Part shown: piece after piece, positions 1 through 64,000 of the stretch
How positions within the stretch are numbered: position 1 is the first letter of the stretch
Layout: each line of letters opens with the position of its first letter
NCBI GenBank assembly: GCA_040285825.1
Contig: JAUPSS010000011.1
Location: forward strand, 879,658-943,657
Direction: 5' to 3'
From: Eukaryota sp. TZLM1-RC
Taxonomy: Eukaryota > Protista > Metamonada: BaSk clade
DNA length: 64,000 bases
Made by a program: the position numbers and the translations under genes
Notes under the pieces: generated by a model
Databases searched by the model: none
Told to the model about the DNA's origin: nothing
What the model saw: the letters and a program-made list of their open reading frames with translations, nothing else

Positions 1-2053
1 AGGTTCATTGTATTTTTGAATTTAAAATTTTCAGCATTTGAAAGGGGATTATGAATTTCAGAATTAACAAGCCTTTCATTTGAGGCATTACAAGGATCAA
101 CAGACATTACATCCAATAAAATGAAGCTTCCATCTAATCCAGGTAATATGACATCACCTCTATTATTCTTATGAAAATCATTTTCAGCATCAAACAGATT
201 TGACAACAAAGGTTCCAAGAAGGATTCAATTCTATGAGATTTACACATACAATATAACTGGTCTCTCACAGCATCATGAACCTTGCTTCTAAAAGTAATA
301 AAATGTTTACAATTTAACAAATGAGTAGTTGTAATTTCTCGAGAACATTTACAAATTAAATTATGAGGTAAATTATCAGGCCAGATAAAGGAACGAAATC
401 TCATATTCAGAGTCCAAGCAGAATCGGATAAGAGAGTACCATAAACTTGTGGAATTGTTGTTACTAAGGCAGAAGAAGTACTGTCACACATATCTTGTAA
501 AAGATTTGCAAAAGCGGGATTCTTTTTCTTGGCCAAGCCAAGTCTAACATCAAAATCCAAGCTTTCAAAAATCTTTGACAATTTTGTTGAAGCTTTTTAC
601 AGCAAAACTGTAAATTAAATAGAGATCGGTTTGGAATTTCTTGAATTGATTGAGGAAAACATTTGGTCCAAATTTGTGGCGGTAATTTTTCAAGTTCACA
701 AGATAACTCATACAAATAGGGACTACAATTGGGGACTAACAGATGAGAATCATCAGGAAATCTACGAGAAAATTCATAAATAAAATTTTTGCCACCACCC
801 AAGAATGCTGATTGACACAAAATTGAAGATTTAGTAAAACCAATACCACCCAAATTTGCTGAAGAAAATAAATGGCTTTTCAACATTCCTGGTTCTACAT
901 CCAATAAATCAGCAAAAAATTCTGTTCTCAATGAATTAAAAGAACGACAAAAATCTAATGCTATGGAAGGAGCACAAGATCTCAAAATGTGGGTTATTCT
1001 CCCAGTGTAGCAAATTTTAAGCATGAAAAATTTAATATGCTTTTCTATATCTAAAGAAGAAATTGAATCAAGTTCAATTTTCATTTTTTCCAAAATACCT
1101 TGCAATTCATTCTGAATTTGAGGCACATTTCCTAACCAACAACCAAGGAACTTAAAAGCATCACTACTATAATTAGTAAAAGGGACAATAGAATCGTTTA
1201 TCACGAGGTCTTGAGCAGAAGAGCCAATCAGAAGGCATTTGCTGGCATTAAGATGAAGCCCAATATTTTCATATGAATCGGCAATTTCTTGAGCAACCAA
1301 TTCTAGTAAATCAAATGAACCAATCAAGGATATATCATCCATATAAGCAACTATTTTTATAGAAGGGTATTTTTGCTTAATGATATTTAAAGTTTTGTGA
1401 ATAGCTAAACAAAACAATAATGGGCCTAAAGGATCTCCCTGCTTCACTCCAGAAGATGATTTAAGACCAAATGAATTAAAAATTAAATCTGATTCTTTCC
1501 CATAAAAATGGTAGAAAAAAACTCGATAGCTCAGGAAAATCAGATTTAATAACTTCAAAAATTGCTTCTCGCTTTACAGAATTAAAAGCATTTTTAAAGT
1601 CGAGATTAAAAATAAAATTATTTTCCTCTGCATTAAAAAAGGTATCAGAGGCAATAGCAGCAACAGAAGCACCATCAATTGTTTTGATTCCAAATTGATG
1701 AGGATTCAAAAATGTATAAGCTTTGTCTTTGACACGATCGAAGACAATTGATGCTAGCAAACGAGAAAGAGATTCACCAACAGCAATTGGGCGTATTCCA
1801 TCAGGTTTGATTCCGTTTCCAGGCTTTACTAAAGCAATCAGACGTGCTGCGAGTAATTCAAATGGAGGATTAATTTTCAAAACAATCAATTGTTGAAAAT
1901 AGTGGGCTAGATCATCAGCAATTTCGGGAGCACTGCAACACGCTATTTTTAAGAGATCAAAAGAAATTCCAGATGGGGCTGCTGCTTTCCCCTTTGGCAA
2001 TTTTTGAATAGCTTTAAGAACTTCAATTGCAGTAATAGGATTTTCAATCCAAA
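1..2053 (-). mobile_element. Family A copy, 5'-truncated, 3' end outside window
   Basis: ORFs 464-1558 and 1476-2072 carry RT motifs QGDPLGP and YMDD; same 5' junction (aaaccatgaagaa) as at 12983 and 20877. Confidence 0.9.
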
Positions 2054-2209
2054 CCATGAAGAAGGACATCAAAAATACAATTACGTTTCACAGAATTGAA
2101 AGCATTTTTGAAATCCAAATTAAAAATATATTGATGCTGTTGACTATTGAAAAAAACATCTGAAGTCATTGAAGCAACAGAAGCACCTTTAACAGTTTTT
2201 ATACCAAAT
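2054..2209 (-). mobile_element. Family B RT fragment
   Basis: Reverse complement of about 21460-21615. Confidence 0.85.
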
Positions 2210-2637
2210 GTTGAAAAATTGAAATCCCTCCATCCAACTGAACATTTTTGCCCCAGTAAGCCTTCTATTTGTCAATATTGGCTCGAAAATCCATTTCAGG
2301 CTCAAGAAGTATTGAATGCCGTTGCTAAATTACCAAAAGGAAAAGCTGCTGGTCCTTCAGGCATTTCCTTTGATTTGTTAAAAACTGCCTGTAAAAATGC
2401 TCCTGAAATTGTTGAGGATCTTGCTTCCTATTTTCAAAATTTAATGTGTTTAAATTATGTTCCTCCGCCTGAATTGACTGCTGCCCGTTTAGTTGCTTTA
2501 GTTAAACCTGGTAAAGGTGACAAACCTGATGGAGTTAGACCAATTGCTATTGGAGAGTCATTAACCAGATTGCTTTCTTCGCTTATTTTTAACAGAATTT
2601 CTACTAAAGCAAGGGACTATTTGAAGCCTTTCCAATT
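2209..2637 (+). mobile_element. Family B RT N-terminal fragment
   Basis: Matches 21035-21463; encodes KGKAAGPSG and RPIAIGE. Confidence 0.9.
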
Positions 2638-3904
2638 TTTTTTATTATTTATTTTTATTCAACAACAAATATGAAATTCACAATTAAAACTCCCCATCCT
2701 CGAAACCTGCCTCCCCTGCATCAAAACAATTAATTGCTAAAGATTCAGAAAATTTCCCAAAAGAAGATAGTGAATCAGAAATTAGTTTTACCATTCCCTT
2801 AAAAATAGAAAATACAATCCTGTTTTGCCAGTAAACACGATTGAAAATTCTTCCAGTTCTTTCCTTTACAACTACAACAAAATCCTCGAGGAAAGCCATA
2901 GCAGCCTTACCTAGAGATCCAAGCAAAGAAAAAACAAATGGACATAAATTATATTGGGCATGAGAATTTTCATTAACCGAGGAAATGGGTTTCGCATATT
3001 TAGCAATTTTATATTTTTCGCCTGCAAGAAGAGGATTATTTACATCCGAGTTAATGAGATGTTCGTTAGAGGAATTACAAGGGTCAATAGACATGGCGTC
3101 CAAAATAGTAAAACTACCATTTAAACCAGGAACAACTAGATCACCTCTAGTCAGACCCATAGAAGCTCTCTTGTAACGCGTACTATCAATATTGGGATCA
3201 TCAAGAATTAATTTTGATAACAGCGGTTCTAAAAAGGAATCTACACGATATGATTTGCACATTACATAAATTTGGTCCCTGACGTTATTATGCACTTTGC
3301 TTCTAAACGTAGTGAAATGTTTGCAGTTCAAAAGATGAGTAAACAACAGAGGTTTACCACATTTACAAGTTAAATGATTGGGCAAATTGTTTGGTCACAG
3401 AAAATAACGAAAACGCATGTTTAGAAGCCATTCATTGTTTTTTCAACAAAAGTCCATAAACAGAGGCAACTTGAGTTACTAAAGCAGCAGCTGAACTATC
3501 ACGAATATCCTTTAAAAAATTACCGAAAGCGGGACTTTTAGTTTTGGCCAATCCAAGTCTTACTTCATAATCCAAGCCTTTATATAATTTAACCAGATGG
3601 TGCTGAAGCTTTTTCAAGCAAAAACGTAAATTTGGAAGTGATCGGGTGGGAATTTCTTGAACATTTTGAGGAAAACACTGAATCCAGATATCACTAGGCA
3701 AATTTTCTAATTCAAATTGCAGTTGATTCAAGTAAAAATTTGATTCACCATTGATCAGATGAACATCAAAAGGGAACCTTTGGAAAAAATCAAAAACAAA
3801 ATTTTTACCACCTCCCAAAAATGCTGCTTTACACAGAATCGAAGAACAAAATACATGACTTCGAATTAAAGATTCATTTACTTCTAATAAAGAAGAAAAA
3901 AATT
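2636..3904 (-). mobile_element. Family B 3' part (zinc finger + RLE + tail)
   Basis: ORF 2684-3385 ends GFEDGEF*; AATAAA and A-tail at 2636-2660; internal deletion of about 30 bp near 3845. Confidence 0.9.
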
Positions 3905-4073
3905 TGCTCTTTTCAGCAAAGCAAAGTGGAGTTTCATCTCTTTTAGCAAAGTCAATTGCTGAGTCTTTACAAACATCAACAGTGACAACATCAACAACTT
4001 TAATAACACCATCAGACGCAGGGGTAATTAAATCAGCACGGCGTTTCCCAAAAGTATTTTCATTTTCATTTTC

Positions 4074-7000
4074 TTTGTTTTTAAAATTTAATTTTATTCT
4101 AAACCTATAAATCAACATCTAAAAAATCCATCTCTCCCAAAACAAAAACACTAGATGCAACTCTCTCATAGTGAGATCCAAGAGAAAGCAAAGCATCAGA
4201 AACCATCTTCAACATTCCCTTAAAAATAGAAAACACAATTCTATTTTGCCAAAACAATCTGTTGAAATTTCTGCCAGTTCTTTTTTTTTTTTTTTAAAAT
4301 TTAATTTTATTCTAAACCTATAAATCAACATCTAAAAAATCCATCTCTCCCAAAACAAAAACACTAGATGCAACTCTCTCATAGTGAGATCCAAGAGAAA
4401 GCAAAGCATCAGAAACCATCTTCAACATCCCTTAAAAATTATAAAATTTAATTTTATTCTAAACCTATAAATCAACATCTAAAAAATCCATCTCTCCCAA
4501 AACAAAAACACTAGATGCAACTCTCTCATAGTGAGATCCAAGAGAAAGCAAAGCATCAGAAACCATCTTCAACATCCCCTTAAAAATAGAAAACACAATT
4601 CTATTTTGACAAAACAATCTGTTGAAATTTCTGCCAGTTCTTCTCTTTACAATCATTTCAAAATCATCCAAAAAACGTAAAGCAGTTGGTGCAAGTGAAC
4701 CAAAAAGGGAAAATACAAATGGATACAAATTGTATTTTGCATGCTGTAGACTGGCCAATTTGGACAAAGGTTCATTGTATTTTTGAATTTAAAATTTTCA
4801 GCATTTGAAAGGGGATTATGAATTTCAGAATTAACAAGCCTTTCATTTGAGGCATTACAAGGATCAACAGACATTACATCCAATAAAATGAAGCTTCCAT
4901 CTAATCCAGGTAATATGACATCACCTCTATTATTCTTATGAAAATCATTTTCAGCATCAAACAGATTTGACAACAAAGGTTCCAAGAAGGATTCAATTCT
5001 ATGAGATTTACACATACAATATAACTGGTCTCTTACAGCATCATGAACCTTGCTTCTAAAAGTAATAAAATGTTTACAATTTAACAAATGAGTAGTTGTA
5101 ATTTCTCGAGAACATTTACAAATTAAATTATGAGGTAAATTATCAGGCCAGATAAAGGAACGAAATCTCATATTCAGAGTCCAAGCAGAATCGGATAAGA
5201 GAGTACCATAAACTTGTGGAATTGTTGTTACTAAGGCAGAAGAAGTACTGTCACACATATCTTGTAAAAAGATTTGCAAAAGCGGGATTCTTTTTCTTGG
5301 CCAAGCCAAGTCTAACATCAAAATCCAAGCTTTCAAAAAATCTTTGACAATTTTTGTTGAAGCTTTTTACAGCAAAACTGTAAATTAAATAGAGATCGGT
5401 TTGGAATTTCTTGAATTGATTGAGGAAAACATTTGGTCCAAATTTGTGGCGGTAATTTTTCAAGTTCACAAGATAACTCATACAAATAGGGACTACAATT
5501 GGGGACTAACAGATGAGAATCATCAGGAAATCTACGAGAAAATTCATAAATAAAATTTTTGCCACCACCCAAGAATGCTGATTGACACAAAATTGAAGAT
5601 TTAGTAAATCCAATACCCCCCAAATTTGCTGAAGAAAATAAATGGCTTTTCAACATTCCTGGTTCTACATCCAATAAATCAGCAAAAATTCTGTTCTCAA
5701 TGAATTAAAAGAACGACAAAAATCTAATGCTATGGAAGGAGCACAAGATCTCAAAATGTGGGTTATTCTCCCAGTGTAGCAAATTTTAAGCATAAAAAAA
5801 TTTAATATGCTTTTCTATATCTAAAGAAGAAATTGAATCAAGTTCAATTTTCATTTTTCCAAAATAACTTGCAATTCATTCTGAATTTGAGGCACATTTC
5901 CTAACCAACAACCAAGGAACTTAAAAGCATCACTACTATAATTAGTAAAAGGGACAATAGAATCGTTTATCACGAGGTCTTGAGCAGAAGAGCCAATCAG
6001 AAGGCATTTGCTGGCATTAAGATGAAGCCCAATATTTTCATATGAATCGGCAATTTCTTGAGCAACCAATTCTAGTAAATCAAATGAACCAATCAAGGAT
6101 ATATCATCCATATAAGCAACTATTTTTATAGAAGGGTATTTTTGCTTAATGATATTTAAAGTTTTGTGAATAGCCAAACAAAACAATAATGGACCTAAAG
6201 GGTCACCTTGCTTCACACCAGAAGATGATTTAAGAGCAAATGAATTAAAAATTAAATCTGATTCTTTACCATAAAAATGGTAGAAAAAAACTCGATAGCT
6301 CAGGAAAATCAGATTTAATAACTTCAAAAATTGCTTCTCGCTTTACAGAATTAAAAGCATTTTTAAAGTCGAGATTAAAAATAAAATTATTTTCCTCTGC
6401 ATTAAAAAAGGTATCAGAGGCAATAGCAGCAACAGAAGCACCATCAATTGTTTTGATTCCAAATTGATGAGGATTCAAAAATGTAGAGGCTTTGTCTTTG
6501 ACACGATCGAAGACAATTGATGCCAGCAAACGAGAAAGAGATTCACCAACAGCAATTGGGCGTATTCCATCAGGTTTGATTCCGTTTCCAGGCTTTACTA
6601 AAGCAATCAGACGTGCTGCGAGCAATTCAAATGGAGGATTTATTTTCAAAACAATTAATTGTTGAAAATAGTGGGCTAGATCATCAGCAATTTCGGGAGC
6701 ACTGGAACACGCTATTTTTAAGAGATCAAAAGAAATTCCAGATGGGCCTGCTGCTTTCCCCTTAGGTAATTTTTGAATAGCTTTAAGAACCTCAATTGCA
6801 GTAATAGGATTTTCAATCCAAAAAGGACACACTTCAGGCTTGCTGCACTTGAAATTTTCTTGAGGATGCAACTTTTGGAGTTTTTCAAGGGTATCAGAGT
6901 TTACATCAGCCAAAGAAGAGGAAAACAAAGACTGCTTTGCGGCACCATAACGACCACGTAAGCACAATTTTCGGCAAATTTTTGATTTTACAATTTTTCT

Positions 7001-7889
7001 ATTTCCAAATTTTTTTCTTAAAACAATTTTTGTTTTTTCTAGCAAAATATTTCCAGAAGGATGAAATATTCCACTTATTATTTTTCAATTCAGAAGTAAA
7101 ATTTCTCATTTCCATTGAGAAGGGGATTGTGCTGGCGGGACTTATTTCTACTGGGATCCGGATCGGGGGTCTTACGGTATCAACGGCTTTACAATTCGTA
7201 CAAAACAGAAGTTTTCGACCATTTCGTGAATCTGCAACATCTTTTTTGCAAAATGGACAACAAAAATTACTGTTCTGCCAGTTCTTCTCTTTACAATCAT
7301 TTCAAAATCATCCAAAAAACGTAAAGCAGTTGGTGCAAGTGAACCAAAAAGGGAAAATACAAATGGATACAAATTGTATTTTGCATGCTGTAGACTGGCC
7401 AATTTGGACAAAGGTTCATTGTATTTTTTGAATTTAAAATTTTCAGCATTTGAAAGGGGATTATGAATTTCAGAATTAACAAGCCTTTCATTTGAGGCAT
7501 TACAAGGATCAACAGACATTACATCCAATAAAATGAAGCTTCCATCTAATCCAGGTAATATGACATCACCTCTATTATTCTTATGAAAATCATTTTCAGC
7601 ATCAAACAGATTTGACAACAAAGGTTCCAAGAAGGATTCAATTCTATGAGATTTACACATACAATATAACTGGTCTCTCACAGCATCATGAACCTTGCTT
7701 CTAAAAGTAATAAAATGTTTACAATTTAACAAATGAGTAGTTGTAATTTCTCGAGAACATTTACAAATTAAATTATGAGGTAAATTATCAGGCCAGATAA
7801 AGGAACGAAATCTCATATTCAGAGTCCAAGCAGAATCGGATAAGAGAGTACCATAAACTTGTGGAATTGTTGTTACTAAGGCAGAAGAA
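4074..7889 (-). mobile_element. Family A 3' 0.8 kb copy (4074-4282 + 7273-7889) inserted in F
   Basis: Uninterrupted paralog at 15007-15820. Confidence 0.85.
4283..7272 (-). mobile_element. Family A insertion (155 bp 3' stub + 2.8 kb copy) inside another A
   Basis: TSD ttctgccagttctt at 4269-4282 and 7273-7286; RT ORFs 5851-6327 and 6266-7045. Confidence 0.9.
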
Positions 7890-7978
7890 ATTTCATTTTC
7901 AGATGACAACCTTCGCACAAGTGGTTCAACAAAAGCCTCAATGTGATGGCTTTTGCACATAGCGTATAGTTGGTCTCT

Positions 7979-8377
7979 AACTTAAAAGCTTGTTGGTCAT
8001 AATTGATAAAAGGAATCTGAGCTCCACCAATCATCAAAGATTGTTTTTCTCTACCAATCAAGAGACATTTAGATGGGTTCAAAGCTAAACCAATTTCTTT
8101 GTATTTCGCCGCAATGTCTTCAGAAACCCTAGAAATGCTTTCAAAAGAACCAATAATAGAAATGTCATCCATATAGGCAACAATACGCAAATCAGGGAAA
8201 TCTTGTTGTGTCATTTTAATAATATTATGAATAGCCAAACAAAACAGCAAAGGGCCAAGAGGATCACCTTGTTTCACACCAGAAGAAGATTCAAGGGTAA
8301 ACGAGTCAAAAATTAAGTCTGATTTTTTTCCATAAAATAAATAAAAATATGCAGTAAGTTCAGGAAACCATGAAGAA
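7979..8377 (-). mobile_element. Family B RT core fragment
   Basis: KQGDPLGP...AYMDD in ORF 7876-8277; continues at 12983. Confidence 0.9.
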
Positions 8378-8410
8378 TTTTTTTTTTAAAAATTTAATTT
8401 TATTCTAAAC

Positions 8411-10273
8411 CTATAAATCAACATCTAAAAAATACATCTCTCCCAAAACAAAAACACTAGATGCAACTCTCTCATAGTGAGATCCAAGAGAAAGCAAAGC
8501 ATCAGAAACCATCTTCAACATCCCCTTAAAAATAGAAAACACAATTCTATTTTGCCAAAACAATCTGTTGAAATTTCTGCCAGTTCTTCTCTTTACAATC
8601 ATTTCAAAATCATCCAAATAACGTAAAAGCAGTTGGTGCAAGTGAACCAAAAGGGAAAATACAAATGGATACAAATTGTATTTTTGCATGCTGTAGACTG
8701 GCCAATTTGGACAAAGGTTCATTGTATTTTTGAATTTAAAATTTTCAGCATTTGAAAGGGGATTATGAATTTCAGAATTAACAAGCCTTTCATTTGAGGC
8801 ATTACAAGGATCAACAGACATTACATCCAATAAAATGAAGCTTCCATCTAATCCAGGTAATATGACATCACCTCTATTATTCTTATGAAAATCATTTTCA
8901 GCATCAAACAGATTTGACAACAAAGGTTCCAAGAAGGATTCAATTCTATGAGATTTACACATACAATATAACTGGTCTCTTACAGCATCATGAACCTTGC
9001 TTCTAAAAGTAATAAAATGTTTACAATTTAACAAATGAGTAGTTGTAATTTCTCGAGAACATTTACAAATTAAATTATGAGGTAAATTATCAGGCCAGAT
9101 AAAGGAAGGAAATCTCATATTCAGAGTCCAAGCAGAATCGGATAAGAGAGTACCATAAACTTGTGGAATTGTTGTTACTAAGGCAGAAGAAGTACTGTCA
9201 CACATATCTTGTAAAAGATTTGCAAAAGCGGGATTCTTTTTCTTGGCCAAGCCAAGTCTAACATCAAAATCCAAGCTTTCAAAAATCTTTGACAATTTTT
9301 GTTGAAGCTTTTTACAGCAAAACTGTAAATTAAATAGAGATCGGTTTGGAATTTCTTGAATTGATTGAGGAAAACATTTGGTCCAAATTTGTGGCGGTAA
9401 TTTTTCAAGTTCACAAGATAACTCATACAAATAGGGACTACAATTGGGGACTAACAGATGAGAATCATCAGGAAATCTACGAGAAAATTCATAAATAAAA
9501 TTTTTGCCACCACCCAAGAATGCTGATTGACACAAAATTGAAGATTTAGTAAAACCAATACCACCCAAATTTGCTGAAGAAAATAAATGGCTTTTCAACA
9601 TTCCTGGTTCTACATCCAATAAATCAGCAAAAAATTCTGTTCTCAATGAATTAAAAGAACGACAAAAATCTAATGCTATGGAAGGAGCACAAGATCTCAA
9701 AATGTGGGTTATTCTCCCAGTGTAGCAAATTTTAAGCATGAAAAATTTAATATGCTTTTCTATATCTAAAGAAGAAATTGAATCAAGTTCAATTTTCATT
9801 TTTTCCAAAATACCTTGCAATTCATTCTGAATTTGAGGCACATTTCCTAACCAACAACCAAGGAACTTAAAAGCATCACTACTATAATTAGTAAAAGGGA
9901 CAATAGAATCGTTTATCACGAGGTCTTGAGCAGAAGAGCCAATCAGAAGGCATTTGCTGGCATTAAGATGAAGCCCAATATTTTCATATGAATCGGCAAT
10001 TTCTTGAGCAACCAATTCTAGTAAATCAAATGAACCAATCAAGGATATATCATCCATATAAGCAACTATTTTTATAGAAGGGTATTTTTGCTTAATGATA
10101 TTTAAAGTTTTGTGAATAGCTAAACAAAACAATAATGGGCCTAAAGGATCTCCCTGCTTCACTCCAGAAGATGATTTAAGACCAAATGAATTAAAAATTA
10201 AATCTGATTCTTTCCCATAAAAATGGTAGAAAAAAACTCGATAGCTCAGGAAAATCAGATTTAATAACTTCAA
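8411..10273 (-). CDS. Family A polyprotein fragment: RT C-half, zinc finger, RLE
   Basis: 620 aa ORF with QGDPLGP, YMDD, CKC-x7-H-x3-C, HDAVRD, RGD..D. Confidence 0.85.
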   Translation of the reverse strand: MKLLNLIFLSYRVFFYHFYGKESDLIFNSFGLKSSSGVKQGDPLGPLLFCLAIHKTLNIIKQKYPSIKIVAYMDDISLIGSFDLLELVAQEIADSYENIGLHLNASKCLLIGSSAQDLVINDSIVPFTNYSSDAFKFLGCWLGNVPQIQNELQGILEKMKIELDSISSLDIEKHIKFFMLKICYTGRITHILRSCAPSIALDFCRSFNSLRTEFFADLLDVEPGMLKSHLFSSANLGGIGFTKSSILCQSAFLGGGKNFIYEFSRRFPDDSHLLVPNCSPYLYELSCELEKLPPQIWTKCFPQSIQEIPNRSLFNLQFCCKKLQQKLSKIFESLDFDVRLGLAKKKNPAFANLLQDMCDSTSSALVTTIPQVYGTLLSDSAWTLNMRFPSFIWPDNLPHNLICKCSREITTTHLLNCKHFITFRSKVHDAVRDQLYCMCKSHRIESFLEPLLSNLFDAENDFHKNNRGDVILPGLDGSFILLDVMSVDPCNASNERLVNSEIHNPLSNAENFKFKNTMNLCPNWPVYSMQKYNLYPFVFSLLVHLHQLLLRYLDDFEMIVKRRTGRNFNRLFWQNRIVFSIFKGMLKMVSDALLSLGSHYERVASSVFVLGEMYFLDVDL

Positions 10274-10616
10274 AAATTGCTTCTCGCTTTACAGAATTAA
10301 AAGCATTTTTAAAGTCGAGATTAAAAATAAAATTATTTTCCTCTGCATTAAAAAAGGTATCAGAGGCAATAGCAGCAACAGAAGCACCATCAATTGTTTT
10401 GATTCCAAATTGATGAGGATTCAAAAATGTATAAGCTTTGTCTTTGACACGATCGAAGACAATTGATGCTAGCAAACGAGAAAGAGATTCACCAACAGCA
10501 ATTGGGCGTATTCCATCAGGTTTGATTCCGTTTCCAGGCTTTACTAAAGCAATCAGACGTGCTGCGAGTAATTCAAATGGAGGATTAATTTTCAAAACAA
10601 TCAATTGTTGAAAATA

Positions 10617-12820: not shown

Positions 12821-12985
12821 ATTGTTGAAAATAGTGGGCTAGATCATCAGCAATTTCGGGAGCACTGGAACATGCTATTTTTAAGAGATCAAAAGAAATT
12901 CCAGATGGGCCTGCTGCTTTCCCCTTTGGCAATTTCTGAATAGCTTTAAGAACTTCAATTGCAGTAATAGGATTTTCAATCCAAA

Positions 12986-14836: not shown

Positions 14837-15913
14837 TTGCTCTTTTCAGCAAAGCAAAGTGGAGTTTCATCTCTTTTAGCAAAGTCAATTGCTGAGTCTT
14901 TACAAACATCAACAGTGACAACATCAACAACTTTAATAACACCATCAGACGCAGGGGTAATTAAATCAGCACGGCGTTTCCCAAAAGTATTTTCATTTTC
15001 ATTTTCTTTGTTTTTAAAATTTAATTTTATTCTAAACCTATAAATCAACATCTAAAAAAATCCATCTCTCCCAAAACAAAAACACTAGATGCAACTCTCT
15101 CATAGTGAGATCCAAGAGAAAGCAAAGCATCAGAAACCATCTTCAACATTCCCTTAAAAATAGAAAACACAATTCTATTTTTGCCAAAACAATCTGTTGA
15201 AATTTCTGCCAGTTCTTCTCTTTACAATCATTTCAAAATCATCCAAAAAACGTAAAGCAGTTGGTGCAAGTGAACCAAAAGGGAAAATACAAATGGATAC
15301 AAATTGTATTTTTGCATGCTGTAGACTGGCCAATTTGGACAAAGGTTCATTGTATTTTTTGAATTTAAAATTTTCAGCATTTGAAAGGGGATTATGAATT
15401 TCAGAATTAACAAGCCTTTCATTTGAGGCATTACAAGGATCAACAGACATTACATCCAATAAAATGAAGCTTCCATCTAATCCAGGTAATATGACATCAC
15501 CTCTATTATTCTTATGAAAATCATTTTCAGCATCAAACAGATTTGACAACAAAGGTTCCAAGAAGGATTCAATTCTATGAGATTTACACATACAATATAA
15601 CTGGTCTCTTACAGCATCATGAACCTTGCTTCTAAAAGTAATAAAATGTTTACAATTTAACAAATGAGTAGTTGTAATTTCTCGAGAACATTTACAAATT
15701 AAATTATGAGGTAAATTATCAGGCCAGATAAAGGAACGAAATCTCATATTCAGAGTCCAAGCAGAATCGGATAAGAGAGTACCATAAACTTGTGGAATTG
15801 TTGTTACTAAGGCAGAAGAAATTTTCATTTTCAGATGACAACCTTCGCACAAGTGGTTCAACAAAAGCCTCAATGTGATGGCTTTTGCACATAGCGTATA
15901 GTTGGTCTCTAAC
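14837..15913 (-). mobile_element. Family F fragment with nested family A 3' copy (15007-15820)
   Basis: TSD attttcattttc on both sides of the A copy. Confidence 0.85.
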
Positions 15914-26121: not shown

Positions 26122-26126
26122 GTTTA

Positions 26127-26133
26127 GAATAAA
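26127..26133 (+). promoter_or_regulatory. Putative AATAAA polyadenylation signal of family A
   Basis: AATAAA just after the stop and about 10 nt before the A-tail; equivalent motif in families B-E. Confidence 0.6.
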
Positions 26134-32222: not shown

Positions 32223-32227
32223 TAATA

Positions 32228-32416: not shown

Positions 32417-32422
32417 CCAGCA

Positions 32423-50477: not shown

Positions 50478-50613
50478 GAAAAATTTTAATTTATTATTAA
50501 ACTACAGTCTAAAAGTCAATATCTTCAAAACAAGCTTCCACACCATCAAACCTCACAACAGCAATTTCTTCGTAATGTGCACTGACAGACATCAAAGCTT
50601 TCGAAATCATTTT
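50478..50613 (-). mobile_element. Family D variant (D2) 3' 135 bp in B
   Basis: TSD agacttagttt at 50467-50477 and 50614-50624. Confidence 0.88.
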
Positions 50614-50656
50614 AGACTTAGTTTTTGACTCCTTTACCCTTGAATCTTCTTCTGGT

Positions 50657-52432: not shown

Positions 52433-52452
52433 TTGTGTATTTCATATTTGTT

Positions 52453-53282: not shown

Positions 53283-54665
53283 AATTTGCACACTTGATTA
53301 AATTAAATCATAACTAATGGGACGACTATCATTAAACCAAGATTTCCTCTACAAAATCTTGATTTGCTTGCTGTCTAGCTAAAGCTTCTCTAATTCGATT
53401 GAAAAACCGCGGTACTCTATTAATAATGGCAAATTGAATCCGTGAACGCCATAAAAAAATATCAAATCTTTTCATTGTTTTTTCTTTCACCATTTTTTGG
53501 AAGTCATCCAATTTCCTGATGATTCTCATCTGTTAGTCCCCAATTGTAGTCCCTATTTGTATGAGTTATCTTGTGAACTTGAAAAATTACCGCCACAAAT
53601 TTGGACCAAATGTTTTCCTCAATCAATTCAAGAAATTCCAAACCGATCTCTATTTAATTTACAGTTTTGCTGTAAAAAGCTTCAACAAAAATTGTCAAAG
53701 ATTTTTGAAAGCTTGGATTTTGATGTTAGACTTGGCTTGGCCAAGAAAAAGAATCCCGCTTTTGCAAATCTTTTACAAGATATGTGTGACAGTACTTCCT
53801 CTGCCTTAGTAACAACAATTCCACAAGTTTATGGTACTCTCTTATCCGATTCTGCTTGGACTCTGAATATGAGATTTCGTTCCTTTATCTGGCCTGATAA
53901 TTTACCTCATAATTTAATTTGTAAATGTTCTCGAGAAATTACAACTACTCATTTGTTAAATTGTAAACATTTTATTACTTTTAGAAGCAAGGTTCATGAT
54001 GCTGTAAGAGACCAGTTATATTGTATGTGTAAATCTCATAGAATTGAATCCTTCTTGGAACCTTTGTTGTCAAATCTGTTTGATGCTGAAAATGATTTTC
54101 ATAAGAATAATAGAGGTGATGTCATATTACCTGGATTAGATGGAAGCTTCATTTTATTGGATGTAATGTCTGTTGATCCTTGTAATGCCTCAAATGAAAG
54201 GCTTGTTAATTCTGAAATTCATAATCCCCTTTCAAATGCTGAAAATTTTAAATTCAAAAATATAATGAACCTTTGTCCAAATTGGCCAGTCTACAGCATG
54301 CAAAATACAATTTGTATCCATTTGTATTTTCCCTTTTGGTTCACTTGCACCAACTGCTTTACCTTTTTTGGATGATTTTGAAATGATTGTAAAGAGAAGA
54401 ACTGGCAGAAATTTCAACAGATTGTTTTGGCAAAATAGAATTGTGTTTTCTATTTTTAAGGGGATGTTGAAGATGGTTTCTGATGCTTTGCTTTCTCTTG
54501 GATCTCACTATGAGAGAGTTGCATCTAGTGTTTTTGTTTTGGGAGAGATGGATTTTTTTAGATGTTGATTTATAGGTTTAGAATAAAATTAAATTTTTTT
54601 TTAAAAAAAAAGTCATCCAAAAAAGTTTCTGCTTCAACTGATAATCTTCCATTTATCGAAAATGG
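53283..54665 (-). mobile_element. Family E 3' piece (53283-53511 + 54610-54665)
   Basis: ORF ends QDFVEEILV*. Confidence 0.88.
53511..54609 (+). mobile_element. Family A 1.1 kb copy, antisense in E
   Basis: TSD aagtcatccaa at 53501-53511 and 54610-54620. Confidence 0.92.
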
Positions 54666-54961
54666 GCCAAGAAAAAAAATCCCGCTTTTGCAAATCTTTT
54701 ACAAGATATGTGTGACAGTACTTCTTCTGCCTTAGTAACAACAATTCCACAAGTTTATGGTACTCTCTTATCCGATTCTGCTTGGACTCTGAATATGAGA
54801 TTTCGTTCCTTTATCTGGCCTGATAATTTACCTCATAATTTAATTTGTAAATGTTCTCGAGAAATTACAACTACTCATTTGTTAAATTGTAAACATTTTA
54901 TTATTTTTAGAAGCAAGGTTCATGATGCTGTAAGAGACCAGTGATATTGTATGTGTAAATC
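54665..54961 (+). mobile_element. Family A internal fragment
   Basis: ORF 54708-54944; joins D at tgtaaatc. Confidence 0.8.
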
Positions 54962-55334
54962 GCTTGATACATTACGGCCTCCATGTAAGATTGCGAATGT
55001 TCTCAGTCCCAAGGCTTCCATTCCCTTTTCTGTTGCGTTTAGAACATTCAGTCTTGCTTTGAAAAAAGGAGAATGGGATATATTTTCTATTTGGAAATTC
55101 TTCCTTGAACAAAAATCAGGTTCTCGTCCCCAAAAGGTTTTCACTCCAAAGAAACAACCCAAGAATAAGACTGTACGAAAACTTTTGCTACGTGGGAGAT
55201 ATGGTTCAGGGAAAAACGCTCTGTTCTCATCTGATCTTGCTCCTGTGACTGATGAAACTGTAAATCAATTAGTGGATCTGCATCCAGCTGAATTTCTTAA
55301 TTTGGATAAACCATCTGCTTCACAATTTTGGAAA

Positions 55335-56140
55335 ATTCCCAACATTTACGGCCTTCTACTTAATGATCACCAATGGACCACTGCAATGAGATTGAGATGT
55401 TTTCTATGGCCTTGCTCATTGCCAAATGATTTAATTTGTCGCTGCAAGAGTGTTGTTACGCTTTCCCATATTTTAAACTGTAAGTATTTCATAACTTATC
55501 GCTCACTTGTTCATGACTCAGTTCGTGATCAATTATATGCCATGTGCAAAAGTTTCAATATAGAGGCATTTATTGAGCCACTAGTACGTAAGCTGTCTTC
55601 AGATCAAACTGATGATTCCTTTGGTAAAAGAAGGGCAGATTTAGTAGCTCCAGGGATCGATGGTGTTCTCAATGTTGTAGACGTTGTCTCAGTGGATGTT
55701 TGCAAAAATTCTGCTGCTCGTTTAGTGTATTCCGCTGACTCGCCGTTATCTAACGCCGAAAAAAAGAAGATAAAAAATATGAAGAACCTTTGGCACAGTT
55801 AGGTAGAGTGGAACATGTGAAATATCAGTTTGTGCCGTTTGCAATTTCTCTTTTTGGCAATATTGGACCTTCAGGCTTGCACTTTTTGGAAAATTTTAAA
55901 AAAGTGTTACTGAATAGGTCTGGTAAAACAATGAACTCCACTTTCTGGTTAAATAGAATTGTTTTTTTGCATTTTCAAGTCTATTCCAACAATGATTTCA
56001 AAGGCACTTTTAGCTATTGGTGTAGAATATGAACGTAATGCTGTGAGTAGGTTCAGTAATAGTGACGCTTGTTTGGAGGATATTGAATTCTAGATGGTTA
56101 TTTTTATCTCAATAAATATTCCAGTTTTTAAAAAAAAAAA
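55335..56140 (+). mobile_element. Family C 3' 0.8 kb in D
   Basis: TSD aattt(t)ggaaa at 55324-55334 and 56141-56150; stop at 56091-56093; A-tail. Confidence 0.9.
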
Positions 56141-57532
56141 AATTTGGAAACAAAATCCACTTTCTGAAAAAGAAGTTGAAACTGCCATTTTCCGTCTTCC
56201 ATCTGGAAAAGCTCCAGGTCCATCTGGAATTACTTTTGATATGCTGAAATCTATGTGCCGCCAAAATGCCTTTATTATTAAAGATTTATGTTCCTTTTTT
56301 CAAGATGTTTTGACAATGAAAATTGTTCCCCCCAAAGAATTAAGTGCATCACGGTTAGTGGCTTTAACTAAACCTAATGGAAAAGTTCGCCCAATTGCCA
56401 TTGGTGAAGCCATTTATCGCCTGATGTCTTCAGTAATTTTTAATCGAGTTTCAACAAAAGCTAAAGAATACTTTTCACCATTCCAATATGGAATCAAAAC
56501 CATAGATGGACCTTCAGTTGCAGCTTTGACATCTGATCTGTTTTTCAATTGTCACGAAAATAGTTGCATTTTTAATCTTGATTTCAAAAATGCTTTCAAT
56601 TCAGTGAAAAGAGATTCAATTTGGAAAAATCAAATCAAATTTTCCTGAACTCGAAACCTTTTTTTATAGGTTTTAAGGTAATTCATCTGATTTAATTTTT
56701 AATTCTTTTAATCTGGATTCTTTATCAGGAGTTAAACAAGGAGACCCTTTAGGTCCTTTCTTTTTTTGTCTTGCAATTCACCCAATTTTGAAAAAATTAA
56801 AAGAAGAAAATTCTGACCTTCAAGTGGTAGCTTACATGGATGACATTTCTTGTATTGGTCCTGAAAGTACAATTAATAGAGTTGCTAATGAAGCTGCTAC
56901 AATATACCAATCCATAGGTCTTGATTTGAATGTTCAAAAATGTTTTTGTATTTCTAGAAAAAATGTTAAGTTAATAATTAATTCCCTCGAAGTTCCATAT
57001 ATTGATTATACTTCAACTAGTTTCTGCTTTCTGGGTTGCTATTTAGGTTCCGCCGAAAAGACACTTGACAGCCTTGAAAATTATTTAAATTCAATTAAAA
57101 AAGAGCTAGAAGTCATAAAGACTCTTGAATTGGAAAAACATCTTTTTATTACCCTTTCAATATGGTATAAATACTACAGATGGAGTCTCTTCAGCGATTT
57201 TTGCTACTGATGTCTTATTTCGTCAAAATGAATCCAATGTTTGCATGTCATTGGATTTTAGTAATGCTTTCAATTCGCTAAGTCGTCGCAGTATCCATGG
57301 TGCTCTATTGCAATATATGCCAGAATTAATACCATATTTTCAATCAACATATTGCACATATTCTAATTTACATTTTGGTAACAACATTTTGATTTCATCA
57401 AGTGGCGTAAAGCAAGGAGATCCGTTAGGACCTCTTTTGTTTTGTTTGGCCATTCATCCTATTCTACTGCAAATTCAAGAGATGTTTCCTTCACTAAAAA
57501 TGATTGCATATATAGATGATGTTGTGCTTATT

Positions 57533-57866
57533 TTTTTTTTAAAAAATTTAATTTTATTCTAAACCTATAAATCAACATCTAAAAAATCCATCTCTCCCAA
57601 AACAAAAACACTAGATGCAACTCTCTCATAGTGAGATCCAAGAGAAAGCAAAGCATCAGAAACCATCTTCAACATCCCCTTAAAAATAGAAAACACAATT
57701 CTATTTTGCCAAAACAATCTGTTGAAATTTCTGCCAGTTCTTCTCTTTACAATCATTTCAAAATCATCCAAAAAACGTAAAGCAGTTGGTGCAAGTGAAC
57801 CAAAAAGGGAAAATACAAATGGATACAAATTGTATTTTGCATGCTGTAGACTGGCTGTAGACTGAC
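57533..57866 (-). mobile_element. Family A 3' 330 bp, antisense in E
   Basis: TSD tgttgtgcttatt at 57520-57532 and 57867-57879. Confidence 0.92.
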
Positions 57867-58130
57867 TGTTGTGCTTATTGGTGAATTAAATATTGTGAAA
57901 AAAGCAACTGTATGATTTAAAGAATTATTTACCAAAATTGGTCTCCGACTTAATTTACTTAAATGTGTTTTGTTATCGAATTCTCCAGTTTCCACAATAA
58001 TTGATGATATTGAAATTCAAGCCAAATTATATTCAATTGATGCTATTCGTCATTTGGGTTCGTTTTTAGGAAATAATGATGAAATTACCAAAAAATTGTT
58101 TGAAAAGTTGAACTCAATTTCTGACAAATT

Positions 58131-58253
58131 TTTTTTTAAAATTTAATTTTATTCTAAACCTATAAATCAACATCTAAAAAATCCATCTCTCCCAAAACAA
58201 AAACACTAGATGCAACTCTCTCATAGTGAGATCCAAGAGAAAGCAAAGCATCA
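58131..58253 (-). mobile_element. Family A 3' 120 bp, antisense in E
   Basis: TSD gacaa(a)att. Confidence 0.85.
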
Positions 58254-58659
58254 AGACAAAATTGACAAAATTGACCGAATGATGAATTTAGATATAAAAA
58301 AACACATCAAATTTACCATTATAAGACTGTGTTTTAGTTCCAATTTTAATCATATATTTCGATCTACAAATCCTCTCGTCACTAGACCTTTGGCTCAAAA
58401 GTTTAATGAGTTACGTGCAAAAGTTCTGTCTCAATTACTGGGATGTAAAATGTTTCAAATTCCAGATCATGCTTACCTTAGTCCACAATATGGTGGTTTA
58501 GGGTGGACGAAGGCTTCTATTCTTACCTCGTGTGCTTTTGTTGGTGGATGCAGAAATGCAATCTTTGAGTTCTCCGAAAGATTTGCAGATTGGGAAGATT
58601 TATTGATGACAACGCAAAGTTCCACTGTTTTTGCATTAAATGAAGAAATTTCAAGAATT

Positions 58660-59384
58660 TTTTTCTTAAAATTTAATTTTATTCTAATCCTATAAATCAA
58701 CATCTAAAAAATCCATCTCTCCCAAAACAAAAACACTAGATGCAACTCTCTCATAGTGAGATCCAAGAGAAAGCAAAGCATCAGAAACCATCTTCAACAT
58801 CCCCTTAAAAATAGAAAACACAATTCTATTTTGCCAAAACAATCTGTTGAAATTTCTGCCAGTTCTTCTCTTTACAATCATTTCGAAATCATCCAAAAAA
58901 CGTAAAGCAGTTGGTGCAAGTGAACCAAAAAGGGAAAATACAAATGGATACAAATTGTATTTTGCATGCTGTAGACTGGCCAATTTGGACAAAGGTTCAT
59001 TGTATTTTTTGAATTTAAAATTTTCAGCATTTGAAAGGGGATTATGAATTTCAGAATTAACAAGCCTTTCATTTGAGGCATTACAAGGATCAACAGACAT
59101 TACATCCAATAAAATAAAGCTTCCATCTAATCCAGGTAATATGACATCACCTCTATTATTCTTATGAAAATCATTTTCAGCATCAAACAGATTTGACAAC
59201 AGAGGTTCCAAGAAGGATTCAATTCTATGAGATTTACACATACAATATAACTGGTCTCTTACAGCATCATGAACCTTGCTTCTAAAAGTAATAAAATGTT
59301 TACAATTTAACAAATGAGTAGTTGTAATTTCTCGAGAACATTTACAAATTAAATTATGAGGTAAATTATCAGGCCAGATAAAGG
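58660..59384 (-). mobile_element. Family A 3' 725 bp, antisense in E
   Basis: TSD aatttcaagaatt at 58647-58659 and 59385-59397. Confidence 0.92.
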
Positions 59385-60532
59385 AATTTCAAGAATTGAT
59401 GTAGAAAAATGGGGTCGATGTTTTCCCCAATCATTCAATGGCAATATTCCAGAAAAAAATGTTTTAAATTTGAAGTACACTCTTCGAACATTACAGAACA
59501 GATTGACTGGAATGTATGAAAAAGATCTTTATAATAATATTTGCAGCTCGGCTGTTTTAAATCAAGATCTTCACTCATTGTTATTGGAAAAGGGTGTTTG
59601 TGAAAACAAGGTGTCAGATTCTTCACTTTTTGTAACCATTGTACCACGAAGATTTGGATTGTGTGCTACTAATGAAGCATTTGTAACAAAGATGAGATTA
59701 TATTTGAACATCCCCATTAACCAATTATTATCAAAAGAAAAATGTATTTGTTCGAATTCACCTCAACTCACTTTGCGCCATGCTCTAAATTGCTCTAAAT
59801 TGATAACTTATCGTTCTTCATTACATGATGCTGTTAGAGACACTGTTTTCAATATGGCACAAACTGCAAGGATATCGTGTATCAAAGAGCCCCTGCTGAA
59901 AGAAACACTTTCTCTGAATAATTTTGGTTCTGATGATAGAGGTGATGTATACTGTGATTGGATTGATAATTCTGAAGCTATTGTTGACTTTGTCTCATGT
60001 AATGTTGCAAACGATACTTTGGTTCACAGAAGAAAACTTAATCCTGTGGCTGCTCTGGATTTTAAAGCAAAAGAAAAACATAGAAAATATGATAAAGAAA
60101 TTGAAGATGCAAATATCGATAGAAATACACAGCTGGTTTTTATTGCTTTTCCATTTTCGATAAATGGAAGATTATCAGTTGAAGCAGAAACTTTTTTTGG
60201 ATGACTTCCAAAAAATGGTGAAAGAAAAAAACAATGAAAAGATTTGATATTTTTTTATGGCGTTCACGGATTCAATTTGCCATTATTAATAGATTACCGC
60301 GGTTTTTCAATCGAATTAGAGAAGCTTTAGCTAGACAGCAAGCAAATCAAGATTTTGTAGAGGAAATCTTGGTTTAATGATAGTCGTCCCATTAGTTATG
60401 ATTTAATTTAATCAAGTGTGCAAATTCAATAAATTAATAATAATTTAAAAACATCTTAAGTTTTTTCTTTTGAAAATTTGTTATGCTGGAAAAATTACTC
60501 ATTTACTGCGATCATTACCTCCATCCCTAACT

Positions 60533-61932
60533 TTTTTTTAACATACTTTTAATTTATTTTCAAAACCACAGTCTAAAAGTCAATATCTTCAAAACAAGCT
60601 TCCACACCATCAAACCTTACAGCAGCAATGTTTTCATAATGTGCACTGACAGACATTAAAGCTTTCGAAATCATTTTAGGAATTGATTTGAAAATAGTAA
60701 AAACAATACGATTTAGCCACAAGCGACGATCAAAACGCTTATTCATTCTTTTTTTCACAAGATTTTCAAAATCATCAATAAAATTCAAAGCAGTTTTTCC
60801 AAGACGACCATGCAACGATATAGCAAATGGGCAAATTTGGTAATCTACATGGCGAACATGTTTCAATTCTTTTAAAGGATTTGCATACTTTTTCCGTTTG
60901 TACAATTCGGAGTCATCAAGGGGGGATACTTCGGATTGAGCATTTTTCAAGGCATTTTTCTTGCAAACATCCACTGTTACGACATCAACAACATTCATGA
61001 CATCATCAAACGAGGGCACAACAACATCAGCACGTCGTTGTCCATATTCTTACGCTTTCATTTATATCAAGAGACCTCAACAAAGGTTCTACAAAAGATT
61101 CAATATGATAGGAATTACACATTGCATGGATTTGATCTCTGACTGCATCATGCAACGTAGAACGATAGGAAATATATCTATTACAATTAAATAAATGTGA
61201 TAATGTCAAACCAGCTCCACATTTACAAAACTAATCATTGGGCAAATTACAAGGCCATAAATAACAACGCATTCTCATAGCAGTGGTCCATTGGTCGTCA
61301 TTCAAAAATAGACCATAAATCTGGGGAATTTGATTTATCAAAACTGCAGATGAACTGTCCTTCAAACCAATCAAAAAATTGGCAAAAGCAGGATTTTCTT
61401 TCTTAGCCGTGCTAAGTCGAACAATAAAATCCTTGTTTTCAAAATTTTTCAAAAGATGTCGTTGGAGCTTTTTCAACGCAAATTTTAATGAATATAAACT
61501 TCTGTCTGGAATTTCCTGAATGGATATGGGGAAACATGATTGCCATAAGTCGGGAGATAAACTGGATATTTCTTCTCTTAAGTTATCCAGGAATATGCTA
61601 TTTGTATTTTCAAGAAGATTTTCGGCAAAAGGATATCTTCTAGAGAATTCAAATACAAAATTTTTCCACCACCAATAAATGCAGCTTTGGTCAAATATTT
61701 TGATGAATTGAATCCAACACCGCCAAGTTGAACATCAGAAAAAATATGATTTTTCAAAATTGATGGATCAACAGACATTAAATAAGCCAAAAATTGGGTA
61801 CGTATTTTTGTTAAATTGTCTACAAAAATTGTAAGTTAGGGATGGAGGTAATGATCGCAGTAAATGAGTAATTTTTCCAGCATAACAAATTTTCAAAAGA
61901 AAAAACTTAAGATGTTTTTCCAATTCAAGAGT
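60533..61932 (-). mobile_element. Family D 3' 1.4 kb, antisense to the adjacent D
   Basis: ORF 60573-61019 ends CFEDIDF*; HDAVRD, RRAD; tail at 60533. Confidence 0.9.
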
Positions 61933-62378
61933 AAAATTGTATTTTCCATGCTGTAGACTGGCCAATTTGGACAAAGGTTCATTGTATTTTTGAATTTAAA
62001 ATTTTCAGCATTTGAAAGGGGATTATGAATTTCAGAATTAACAAGCCTTTCATTTGAGGCATTACAAGGATCAACAGACATTACATCCAATAAAATAAAG
62101 CTTCCATCTCATCCAGGTAATATGACATCACCTCTATTATTCTTATGAAAATCATTTTCAGCATCAAACAGATTTGACAACAGAGGTTCCAAGAAGGATT
62201 CAATTCTATGAGATTTACACATACAATATAACTGGTCTCTTACAGCATCATGAACCTTGCTTCTAAAAAGTAATAAAATGTTTACAATTTAACAAATGAG
62301 TAGTTGTAATTTCTCGAGAACATTTACAAATTAAATTATGAGGTAAATTATCAGGCCAGATAAAGGAATTTCAAGAAT
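61933..62378 (-). repeat. Duplicate of about 58953-59397 (A piece with its E-derived TSD)
   Basis: Shares junction taaaggaatttcaagaatt. Confidence 0.8.
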
Positions 62379-63387
62379 TTTTTTAAATTAATTTTATTTT
62401 ATTGTTAAACCACAGTCTAAAAGTCAATATCTTCAAAACAAGCTTCCACACCATCAAACCTTACAGCAGCAATGTTTTCATAATGTGCACTGACAGACAT
62501 TAAAGCTTTCGAAATCATTTTAGGAATTGATTTGAAAATAGTAAAAACAATACGATTTAGCCACAAGCGACGATCAAAACGCTTATTCATTCTTTTTTTC
62601 ACAAGATTTTCAAAATCATCAATAAAATTCAAAGCAGTTTTTCCAAGACGACCATACAACGATATAGCAAATGGGCAAATTTGGTAATCTACATGGCGAA
62701 CATGTTTCAATTCTTTTAAAGGATTTGCATACTTTTTCCGTTTGTACAATTCGGAGTCATCAAGGGAAGATACTTCGGATTGAGCATTTTTCTTTTTTTT
62801 TTAATTTAATTTTAATTTATTTTCAAAACCACAGTCTAAAAGTCAATATCTTCAAAACAAGCTTCCACACCATCAAACCTTACAGCAGCAATGTTTTCAT
62901 AATGTGCACTGACAGACATTAAAGCTTTCGAAATCATTTTAGGAATTGATTTGAAAATAGTAAAAACAATACGATTTAGCCACAAGCGACGATCAAAACG
63001 CTTATTCATTCTTTTTTTCACAAGATTTTCAAAATCATCAATAAAATTCAAAGCAGTTTTTCCAAGACGACCATACAACGATATAGCAAATGGGCAAATT
63101 TGGTAATCTACATGGCGAACATGCTTTAATTTATTGAATTTGCACACTTGATTAAATTAAATCATAACTAATGGGACGACTATCATTAAACCAAGATTTC
63201 CTCTACAAAATCTTGATTTGCTTGCTGTCTAGCTAAAGCTTCTCTAATTCGATTGAAAAACCGCGGTAATCTATTAATAATGGCAAATTGAATCCGTGAA
63301 CGCCATAAAAAAATATCAAATCTTTTCATTGTTTTTTCTTTCACCATTTTTTGGAAGTCATCCAAAAAAGTTTCTGCTTCAACTGAT
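62379..63387 (-). mobile_element. Stack of 3' ends: D2 (62379-62791), D (62792-63124), E (63126-63387)
   Basis: ORFs 62417-62749, 62836-63147 and 63186-63404, each with a tail. Confidence 0.88.
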
Positions 63388-64000
63388 CTTCCTCCTGTTC
63401 CCAATGTTTCTGCTGATGATGTTAATTATGATTTAAATATTGATCAAACTCATTTACCAAAAACTGTTGCTCCTGATCCTACGGATAATGTCTTGAAACA
63501 TAGTTGTCCTTTTTGCAAAAAGTTCCTCTCTAATTCTTCTAATGGTCGCCCTCTCTTGTTTTGTTTTGACTGTCAAACAAGTGATTCTCTTCGTACACCT
63601 GTTAAAATTCCTGTAGAGGTGAGTCCTGCGAGTTCTGTTCCTTTGTCAATGGAAATGCGTTCTTTTTCTTCGCAATTGAAATTAAACAAATGGAACATAA
63701 CAAGATTTTGGAAATTCTTTGCCAAAAAGAATAAGAAGAAAATTAATTACAAACCAAAACAGAGAAAAGCTAATTCATCTTTTCAAGCAAGAAAATTGTT
63801 TTTGAGAGGTAGATATGGAAGCGGATTAAAAAATATTTTTTCGGGAAAACTGGCTGATACCAATCTCGAAACTGTTGAAAAATTGAAATCCCTCCATCCA
63901 ACTGAACATTTTTGCCCCAGTAAGCCTTCTATTTGTCAATATTGGCTCGAAAATCCATTTCAGGCTCAAGAAGTATTGAATGCCGTTGCTAAATTACCAA
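63388..64000 (+). mobile_element. Family B N-terminal region, runs out of window
   Basis: Encodes HSCPFCKK..LLFCFDC and RGRYGS; matches 49475-49960. Confidence 0.9.

Follow-up and report, generated by a model that had tools for sequence, protein, structure and literature searches.

A gene-free island of nested retrotransposons with predicted restriction-like endonucleases in the interior of a contig of the metamonad Skoliomonas litria

We analysed a stretch of 64 kb of DNA (hereafter "the window") from the free-living metamonad Skoliomonas litria TZLM1-RC, corresponding to record positions 879,658-943,657 of the 1,207,797-bp contig JAUPSS010000011.1. The results show that it consists almost entirely of copies of five families of retrotransposons without long terminal repeats (non-LTR retrotransposons), here termed A, B, C, F and H, which are inserted into one another in both orientations. 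The window is probably the core of a gene-free transposon island in the interior of the 1.2-Mb contig. It looks like a transposon pile-up, not like a proven centromere or chromosome-end domain, and on balance we favour its explanation by a recent genome-wide burst of long interspersed nuclear elements (LINEs) with a restriction-like endonuclease (RLE) of relaxed specificity, whose copies were kept where harmless and reshaped by recombination.

The S. litria genome comprises 31.9 Mb in 16 contigs, with 35.8% GC and 55.4% repeats; of the latter, the genome paper gives only the fraction (PMC11316075), and the RLE families of this species appear to be undescribed. Proteins translated from the window are up to 100% identical to TZLM1-RC proteins (locus tags P9112_), and a comparison of the window with itself revealed that 91% of it matches another part of it. 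Tiling with the references of the five families at a threshold of at least 85% identity accounts for 97.9% of the window, with family A contributing 60%, B 21%, F and C 6% each, and H 4.5%; 35.2 kb lie on the minus strand and 27.6 kb on the plus strand. The untiled remainder is made up of an RLE-coding fragment of a sixth family, H-like pieces (32223-32422 and 57145-57280), and A/T runs at junctions. Within the 64 kb we found no host gene, no tRNA and no TTAGGG telomere array; Rfam at the gathering threshold matched no family, including rRNA, and Tandem Repeats Finder (TRF) detected no satellite. An earlier analysis of the same DNA (hereafter "the original prediction") had described five families plus an internal fragment of a sixth, present in both orientations and with no host DNA between them, and our tiling agrees with this description in all three respects.

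The island extends beyond the window. A second segment of it (L012, record 975,885-996,373; the prefix L denotes loci studied in addition to the window) consists of RLE elements to 98.4%, and no LTR element or DNA transposon was seen in the 84 kb of island formed by the window and L012. The outer bounds are set by an LRR gene at ~839 kb (in L009) and a ribosomal L7Ae gene at ~1,047 kb (in L008), around which the RLE coverage drops to 38-43%. The island is gene-free and internal to the contig, with a span of at least ~117 kb, of which the 84 kb of the window and L012, lying 32 kb apart, were read, and at most ~208 kb, as given by the flanking genes. A further locus, L005 (record 919,729-942,089), is identical to window 40,072-62,432.

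The elements measure ~3.3-3.5 kb per family. The reference for family A is L001:9916-13405 (3.49 kb) and that for family C is L004 ~9910-13190 (3.28 kb), while for B, F and H the references were pieced together from sequences of the window and of L001, L003 and L006; family 5' ends were established for A and C only. Full-length A and C copies start with 8-9 T, followed by CTCCCTCC in A or CTCACTTAC in C. The same T-run begins both full-length A copies of the window (at 22490 and 35894) and the full-length A copies in two other loci (L001:9916 and L007:9917), and the C copy starts in this way at L004:~9910. The 3' ends of all families are runs of A (A6-A17), i.e. the element termini are a T-run at the 5' side and an A-run at the 3' side. 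Two provisional subdivisions were abandoned: an A subfamily truncated at reference position 2759 was an artefact of the query end position, and the splits of C into "D" and "E" and of F into "F" and "G" were dropped after comparison with full-length references. Separately, we noticed that L003:9560-10014, directly upstream of a B copy, is 93% identical to positions 240-694 of the A reference, a match that suggests a 5' module common to A and B.

Exactly 40 segments of the window reach the poly(A) terminus of their family (22 in A, 6 in B, 2 in C, 6 in F and 4 in H), in both orientations, which matches the original estimate of about 40 element 3' ends. As a number of insertions, this count does not stand: judged by the downstream flank, the 40 ends represent only 35 distinct 3' junctions, and given the large composite duplications described below not every 3' end corresponds to an independent insertion, part of the array having arisen by segmental duplication, one unequal crossover and one inversion. 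Nearly all copies are 5'-truncated, and only two of the 40 poly(A) ends, both in family A, belong to full-length copies.

Each family probably encodes a single protein of ~1,040 residues, with an N-terminal CCHC knuckle followed by the reverse transcriptase (RT) and by a C-terminal CCHC motif with a PD-(D/E)xK RLE. Pfam recognised RVT_1 in eight of ten open reading frames (ORFs) of the window (E = 1e-24 to 1e-10); apart from it, only a weak zinc knuckle was found in these ORFs, with no domain of the apurinic/apyrimidinic endonuclease (APE) type (Exo_endo_phos), and the precomputed Pfam annotation of the homologues lists RVT_1 only. We aligned A, B and C with one copy from a sister strain and eight distant relatives. 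Downstream of the RT motifs, this alignment exhibits invariant or near-invariant C-x-C, H, C, H, R/K-x-D, D and E..K..KY (invariant columns in alignment A2: C62, H72, C76, H87, D142, E169 and K172). Compared with the PDB, the alignment profile matched R2 proteins best, with a match that covers the RT and continues into the C-terminal endonuclease (9nl3_A, E = 1e-40), whereas its match to L1 ORF2p was confined to the RT; a profile restricted to the last 280 residues also matched the R2 endonuclease region (E = 8e-5). R2 was reached by profiles only, since single-sequence PDB searches with the C-terminal ORF of B and the RLE region of A returned nothing. In the AlphaFold model of the C-terminal region (predicted local distance difference test, pLDDT, 73; predicted template modelling score, pTM, 0.73), the top seven fold matches in the PDB were all R2, followed by PD-(D/E)xK cap-snatching nucleases.

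The REL motif of SLACS, CRE and MoTeR is given as C..C..H..C..(R)HD/N..E..R/K-x-D..D/E (PMC12857005). A regular expression for this motif, with small substitutions, matched 16 uninterrupted copies of the window, whereas 20 shuffles yielded no match; an intact example at 25465-25707 (+) reads C-x-C-x7-H-x3-C ... HD ... E ... RGD-x13-D. Because of the R2 profile matches, the R2 fold hits and the REL motif, we conclude that the window elements are RLE-type non-LTR retrotransposons, as had been proposed from the start. At the N-terminus, A, B and C contain a Gag-type CX2CX4HX4C knuckle and a C4-like CPFC...FC..C motif instead of C2H2 fingers (e.g. family A, knuckle-containing region at 22938-23219), and C2H2-like motifs are present only in the out-of-genus relatives of alignment A1. 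The nearest out-of-genus relatives, at 25-33% identity, are unnamed proteins on element-sized metagenome and Logan contigs and from Cafeteria, Symbiodinium and Polarella; protein and profile searches, including one with a profile devoid of Skoliomonas sequences, retrieved no named CRE, SLACS, CZAR, NeSL, R4 or HERO protein. Two sister strains, Skoliomonas sp. GEM-RC1 and TZLM3-RCL, also have related RLE families (40-57% identity) in abundance, which implies that the group is older than the split of the strains. As a further feature of the coding sequence, the ORF in families A, B, C and F ends with a short acidic-hydrophobic peptide right before the stop codon (D-V-D-L, D-V-E-F, D-I-E-F or D-I-D-F; e.g. 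window 26092-26121).

Automatic collapse of the tiling identified 14 insertions with collinear host-element flanks on both sides and overlaps of 6-20 bp, and in all 14 the host is another element, in agreement with the earlier statement that every resolvable target lies inside one. The junction sequences show real target-site duplications, e.g. GTGATATCTGGAT, TTAGCCAAGC and AGTCATCCA. Together with the other loci we collected ~19 target-site duplications, mostly of 9-15 bp, among which we found no target motif, save a mild tendency to begin with A; the host positions are scattered, none recurs, and in the 14 nestings the insertion is sense to its host in five cases and antisense in nine. These observations support a target choice that is relaxed at the sequence level, which the original prediction had also envisaged. 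Such duplications are the mark that target-primed reverse transcription leaves when it follows a staggered double nick, and the elements combine the traits of non-LTR retrotransposons, namely an RT, poly(A) 3' ends, frequent 5' truncation, target-site duplications of variable length and an absence of terminal repeats. The nesting is reciprocal: family A hosts insertions of B, C, F and H; family B those of A, F, H and B itself; family F those of A, C and H; and families C and H those of A, from which it follows that the families were active over the same period.

Several nests illustrate this arrangement. The first full-length A copy (22490-26142, +; reference 1-3477), complete from the T-run start to the poly(A) end, sits in a B(+) copy with a target-site duplication of 13-15 bp (GTGATATCTGGAT) and is itself interrupted by the tail of an F element, a 146-bp 3' fragment (24597-24742, -) inserted antisense at A reference 2093-2098. 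The second full-length A copy (32423-35894, -; reference 1-3490) has its ORF in at least two pieces. An old B fragment (18090-27972, -; reference 699-1520) hosts A(-) at 18500-20879, with a target-site duplication of 10-13 bp (TTCTTCATGG), as well as B(+) at 21032-27684, which in turn hosts two A insertions. Two A(+) insertions divide the C copy at 39522-48472 (-; reference 961-3483), one at C 2601-2610 with a target-site duplication of 10 bp and the other at C 2035-2046 with one of 12 bp. An F copy (54960-60533, +) contains C(+) at 55333-56133, with an 11-bp target-site duplication, and H(+) at 57145-60434, and the latter hosts three antisense A tails (57532-57855, 58138-58253 and 58668-59386). 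An H tail (53287-54686, -) hosts A(+) at 53511-54610, with the 11-bp target-site duplication AGTCATCCA.

Insertion is not the only process recorded in the window, as large composite blocks are duplicated within it at 99.3-99.7% identity. A composite A/B/B block at 1-2638 (-) corresponds to 18825-21464 (99.5%), 1889-4282 corresponds to 12821-15217 (99.5%), and 7273-10616 corresponds to 17384-20727 (99.7%). The old B(-) fragment at 18090-27972 has a segmental duplicate at 15911-17095 (-). The two have both neighbours in common and differ in their later insertions: the duplicate hosts H(-) at 16350-16699, with a 12-bp target-site duplication, and the sites occupied by A and B in the old fragment are empty in the duplicate. 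This pair of filled and empty sites indicates that insertion went on after the duplication.

The segment 41896-47388 (+) is a tandem duplication of a unit composed of an A tail and C 2035-2610, with a period of ~2,020 bp. Its middle A copy shares the 5' junction with the third copy and the 3' junction with the first, and its sequence variants are chimeric, changing from third-like to first-like between alignment columns 535 and 625; this pattern fits an unequal crossover between two A copies. At 2051-3909 (duplicate at 12983-14842) we found an inverted derivative of a B-in-B junction. The junction of B tail, poly(A) and antisense B at 27495-27972 recurs in inverted form at 2359-2836, where it adjoins the same left flank, with 98.1% identity over 478 bp, unbroken across the poly(A). 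Such an arrangement would be expected if a B-into-B insertion had made inverted B repeats of 434 bp and the DNA between them had then been inverted. A second B-into-B insertion at the same site was considered and rejected, as the inversion explains the arrangement better.

To place the island in its genomic context, we relied on the locus tags of homologues and on ten loci outside the island. According to the locus tags, the families are present on at least 15 of the 16 contigs and are spread along the large contigs with local concentrations. The ten loci, which were reached via annotated element ORFs and hence are no random sample of the genome, exhibit RLE coverage from 15-20% to 93%. In L004 a full-length C copy, with a target-site duplication of 10 bp, stands alone between host genes in unique DNA, and in L007 a full-length A copy, flanked by the target-site duplication GATTTCCAA, lies in DNA that belongs to none of the families. 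In L001 an A copy lies within an F copy adjoining CNOT1, and in L010 a mini-nest of 6.5 kb is found between the KBP_C, PRA1 and RCC1 genes. Large nests are present in L002 (93%; in the middle of another contig, at 858-880 kb of 1.86 Mb) and L011 (78%), and the right half of L003 is a further dense nest. Elements of other kinds, namely Ty3-like LTR retrotransposons (with RVT_1, RNase H and integrase) and a hAT transposase, were seen in four of the ten loci (L001:2359-6583, L009:18553-21159, L011:7467-9716 and L006:1708-2653).

An alignment of the 0.7-kb A tail from 22 copies yielded a star tree with terminal branches mostly of 0-0.6%, in which the copies of the window mix with those of four other loci and form no local clade. 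This topology speaks for a recent burst across the genome and against local amplification of one copy. The original prediction had postulated accumulation specific to this region; the occurrence of the families on nearly all contigs, including full-length copies beside host genes, and the lack of a local clade of A copies do not support this proposal.

In the explanation that we favour, five concurrently active non-LTR families inserted throughout the genome, also beside genes and with no target motif. Insertions would persist and accumulate where they are harmless, inside earlier copies, and the island would in this way become an ever larger neutral target. Homology-driven events between copies, i.e. 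segmental duplications, one unequal crossover and one inversion, both enlarged and scrambled it. Region-specific targeting is not needed to explain the structure. Several points weigh against this reading. Over the 84 kb read, the island is pure RLE; a neutral sink might be expected to collect also the Ty3-like and hAT elements known from four of the ten loci outside it, and this purity leaves room for some preference of the families for their own chromatin. The coverage in the outside loci, chosen as they were through element ORFs, need not equal true genome densities, and the structure was read from a long-read-based assembly alone. Finally, a large number of the differences by which copies are told apart are indels of one base in homopolymers that may be assembly errors, so that the ages, fine dating and ORF states are approximate.

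The same purity, together with the reciprocal nesting of all five families, speaks for a possible, though in our opinion doubtful, alternative in which integration is directed: element proteins, e.g. through the N-terminal knuckle region, would be tethered to heterochromatin or to resident copies and would steer insertions into the island. Small clusters between genes, such as the 6.5 kb accumulated in a single intergenic gap in L010, also agree with such tethering. It is at odds with the solitary full-length copies bearing target-site duplications in unique DNA (L004 and L007) and with the absence of a recurrent host position, an orientation bias or a target motif among the nestings, and part of the density is explained by local duplication.

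An unlikely alternative, compatible with both tolerance and targeting, is that the island would be the regional centromere of its chromosome, by analogy with those fungi and protists whose centromeres are rich in retrotransposons. The tract is internal, gene-free and of the length given above, and the comparable 93% nest of L002 lies in the middle of another contig. On the other hand, further dense nests exist (L011 and the right half of L003), and the distribution of locus tags suggests that each large contig has several concentrations, which makes one per chromosome doubtful; no satellite was found in the window, and GC content does not mark the island, as its value of 33%, found also for the window itself, is unremarkable compared with the 33-37% of the other loci. 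Somewhat less likely again is the specific version in which such a centromere would have been built only by RLE-type LINEs integrating preferentially into centromeric chromatin. If true, it would be the first centromere described for barthelonid/skoliomonad metamonads and the first made of RLE retrotransposons.

We consider it improbable that the island serves as a small-RNA-generating trap that would silence the five families in the manner of a dual-strand PIWI-interacting RNA (piRNA) cluster: only the layout, with fragments of all active families in both orientations, speaks for it, and any random nest has such a layout. That the locus is a subtelomeric array, or that it is an artefact of an assembly in which repeats were collapsed or misjoined, is very improbable despite the long-read-based assembly, the highly repetitive content and the near-identical duplicated blocks, since the nearest contig end is 264 kb away from the window with host genes further out (L7Ae at ~1,047 kb) and no TTAGGG array was found in the window, contrary to the subtelomeric location that had been among the original suggestions, and since misassembly would not produce 35 distinct junctions, matching target-site duplications and consistent nesting.

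The window contains a number of additional features. The fragment of the sixth family lies at 3910-4082 (-), with a duplicate at 14843-15015, and a further piece of it is found at 7891-7978, 15823-15910 and 18002-18089; it is 50-80% similar at the amino-acid level to the endonuclease region of C and F (tblastx) and is repeated in L001, L003 and L008. A 3' half of B at 50614-52452 (+) retains an ORF of 591 codons, covering the RT C-terminus and the RLE; ahead of it lies an F tail (50484-50615), whose insertion point in B is reference 1179-1189. Two short A tails stacked beside a long A copy at 4083-4446 (-) were reported by TRF as a 147-bp tandem repeat, and two stacked F tails at 62389-63131 (-) as a 419-bp tandem repeat. 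These head-to-tail stacks could be due either to several insertions at, or close to, a tail already in place or to local slippage. The A copies at window 4443-7274 and L002:10596-12894 have their 3' junction at the same place of an A tail (poly(A), then TTTTAAGGG, A reference ~3327-3344) and differ in their 5' sides; the common junction is either a small hot spot or a single event later copied between contigs.

LINEs that carry an RLE are usually site-specific, residing in ribosomal DNA, spliced-leader genes, microsatellites or telomeres (PMC4640811). Here, five very young RLE families of relaxed specificity fill gene-free islands of a free-living metamonad with a 55%-repeat genome. They offer a natural system for the study of how an RLE loses its target specificity, or never had it, of how transposon islands grow through insertion and recombination, and of where centromeres are located in the Skoliomonas lineage.

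Among known elements, R2 resembles the window families in the order of RT, linker, CCHC and PD-(D/E)xK and in target-primed reverse transcription, and R2 structures (9nl3, 9dou, 8gh6 and 8ibw) are the best PDB match of the families both by profile (E = 1e-40) and by fold. R2 is, however, specific to 28S, whereas the window families occupy scattered sites with no 28S target in the window; R2 has an N-terminus with C2H2 and Myb motifs instead of the CX2CX4HX4C knuckle and C4 motif, and the window families differ from it in their poly(A) tails and target-site duplications mostly of 9-15 bp. Members of the CRE clade (CRE1/2, SLACS and CZAR; MoTeR, Cnl1 and FoTeR) are likewise single-ORF RLE elements of ~3.5 kb with the REL motif, but this motif is common to all RLE clades and so is no proof of CRE membership, and the label "CRE-like" of the original prediction is unproven. 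The CRE clade sits in spliced-leader genes or telomere repeats, unlike the window families, which sit in other elements and in unique DNA, and it is characterised by one or more N-terminal C2H2 zinc fingers, which are not present in families A, B and C. CRE1/2 are elements of Crithidia fasciculata, and CZAR is an element of Trypanosoma cruzi. The source of the REL motif, from which only the motif is used here, assigns CRE1/2 to Drosophila and CZAR to Tetrahymena (PMC12857005).

By description only, the window families resemble in behaviour those RLE LINEs that have no strict target and a high copy number. The EhLINEs of Entamoeba are RLE elements with little target specificity. The same is described for the HERO clade (PMC4640811). 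The difference lies in the five families that were active together here and built pure nested islands. Among metamonads, Giardia also harbours RLE-type non-LTR elements (GilM, GilT and Genie) that are also clustered. Their arrays are reportedly head-to-tail, unidirectional and associated with telomeres, whereas the island in S. litria is internal, bidirectional and nested, with target-site duplications. The Skoliomonas lineage is sister to Fornicata (PMC11316075). The general appearance of the island, with gene-free nested retroelements over tens to hundreds of kb in the chromosome interior, is also that of islands in fungi and protists of other groups. In Cryptococcus (Tcn), Dictyostelium (DIRS-1) and Phytophthora (CoLT), gene-free tracts of nested retroelements form CenH3-bound centromeres. 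Those islands are composed of LTR or DIRS elements, whereas the island described here, known from sequence alone, is composed of RLE LINEs.

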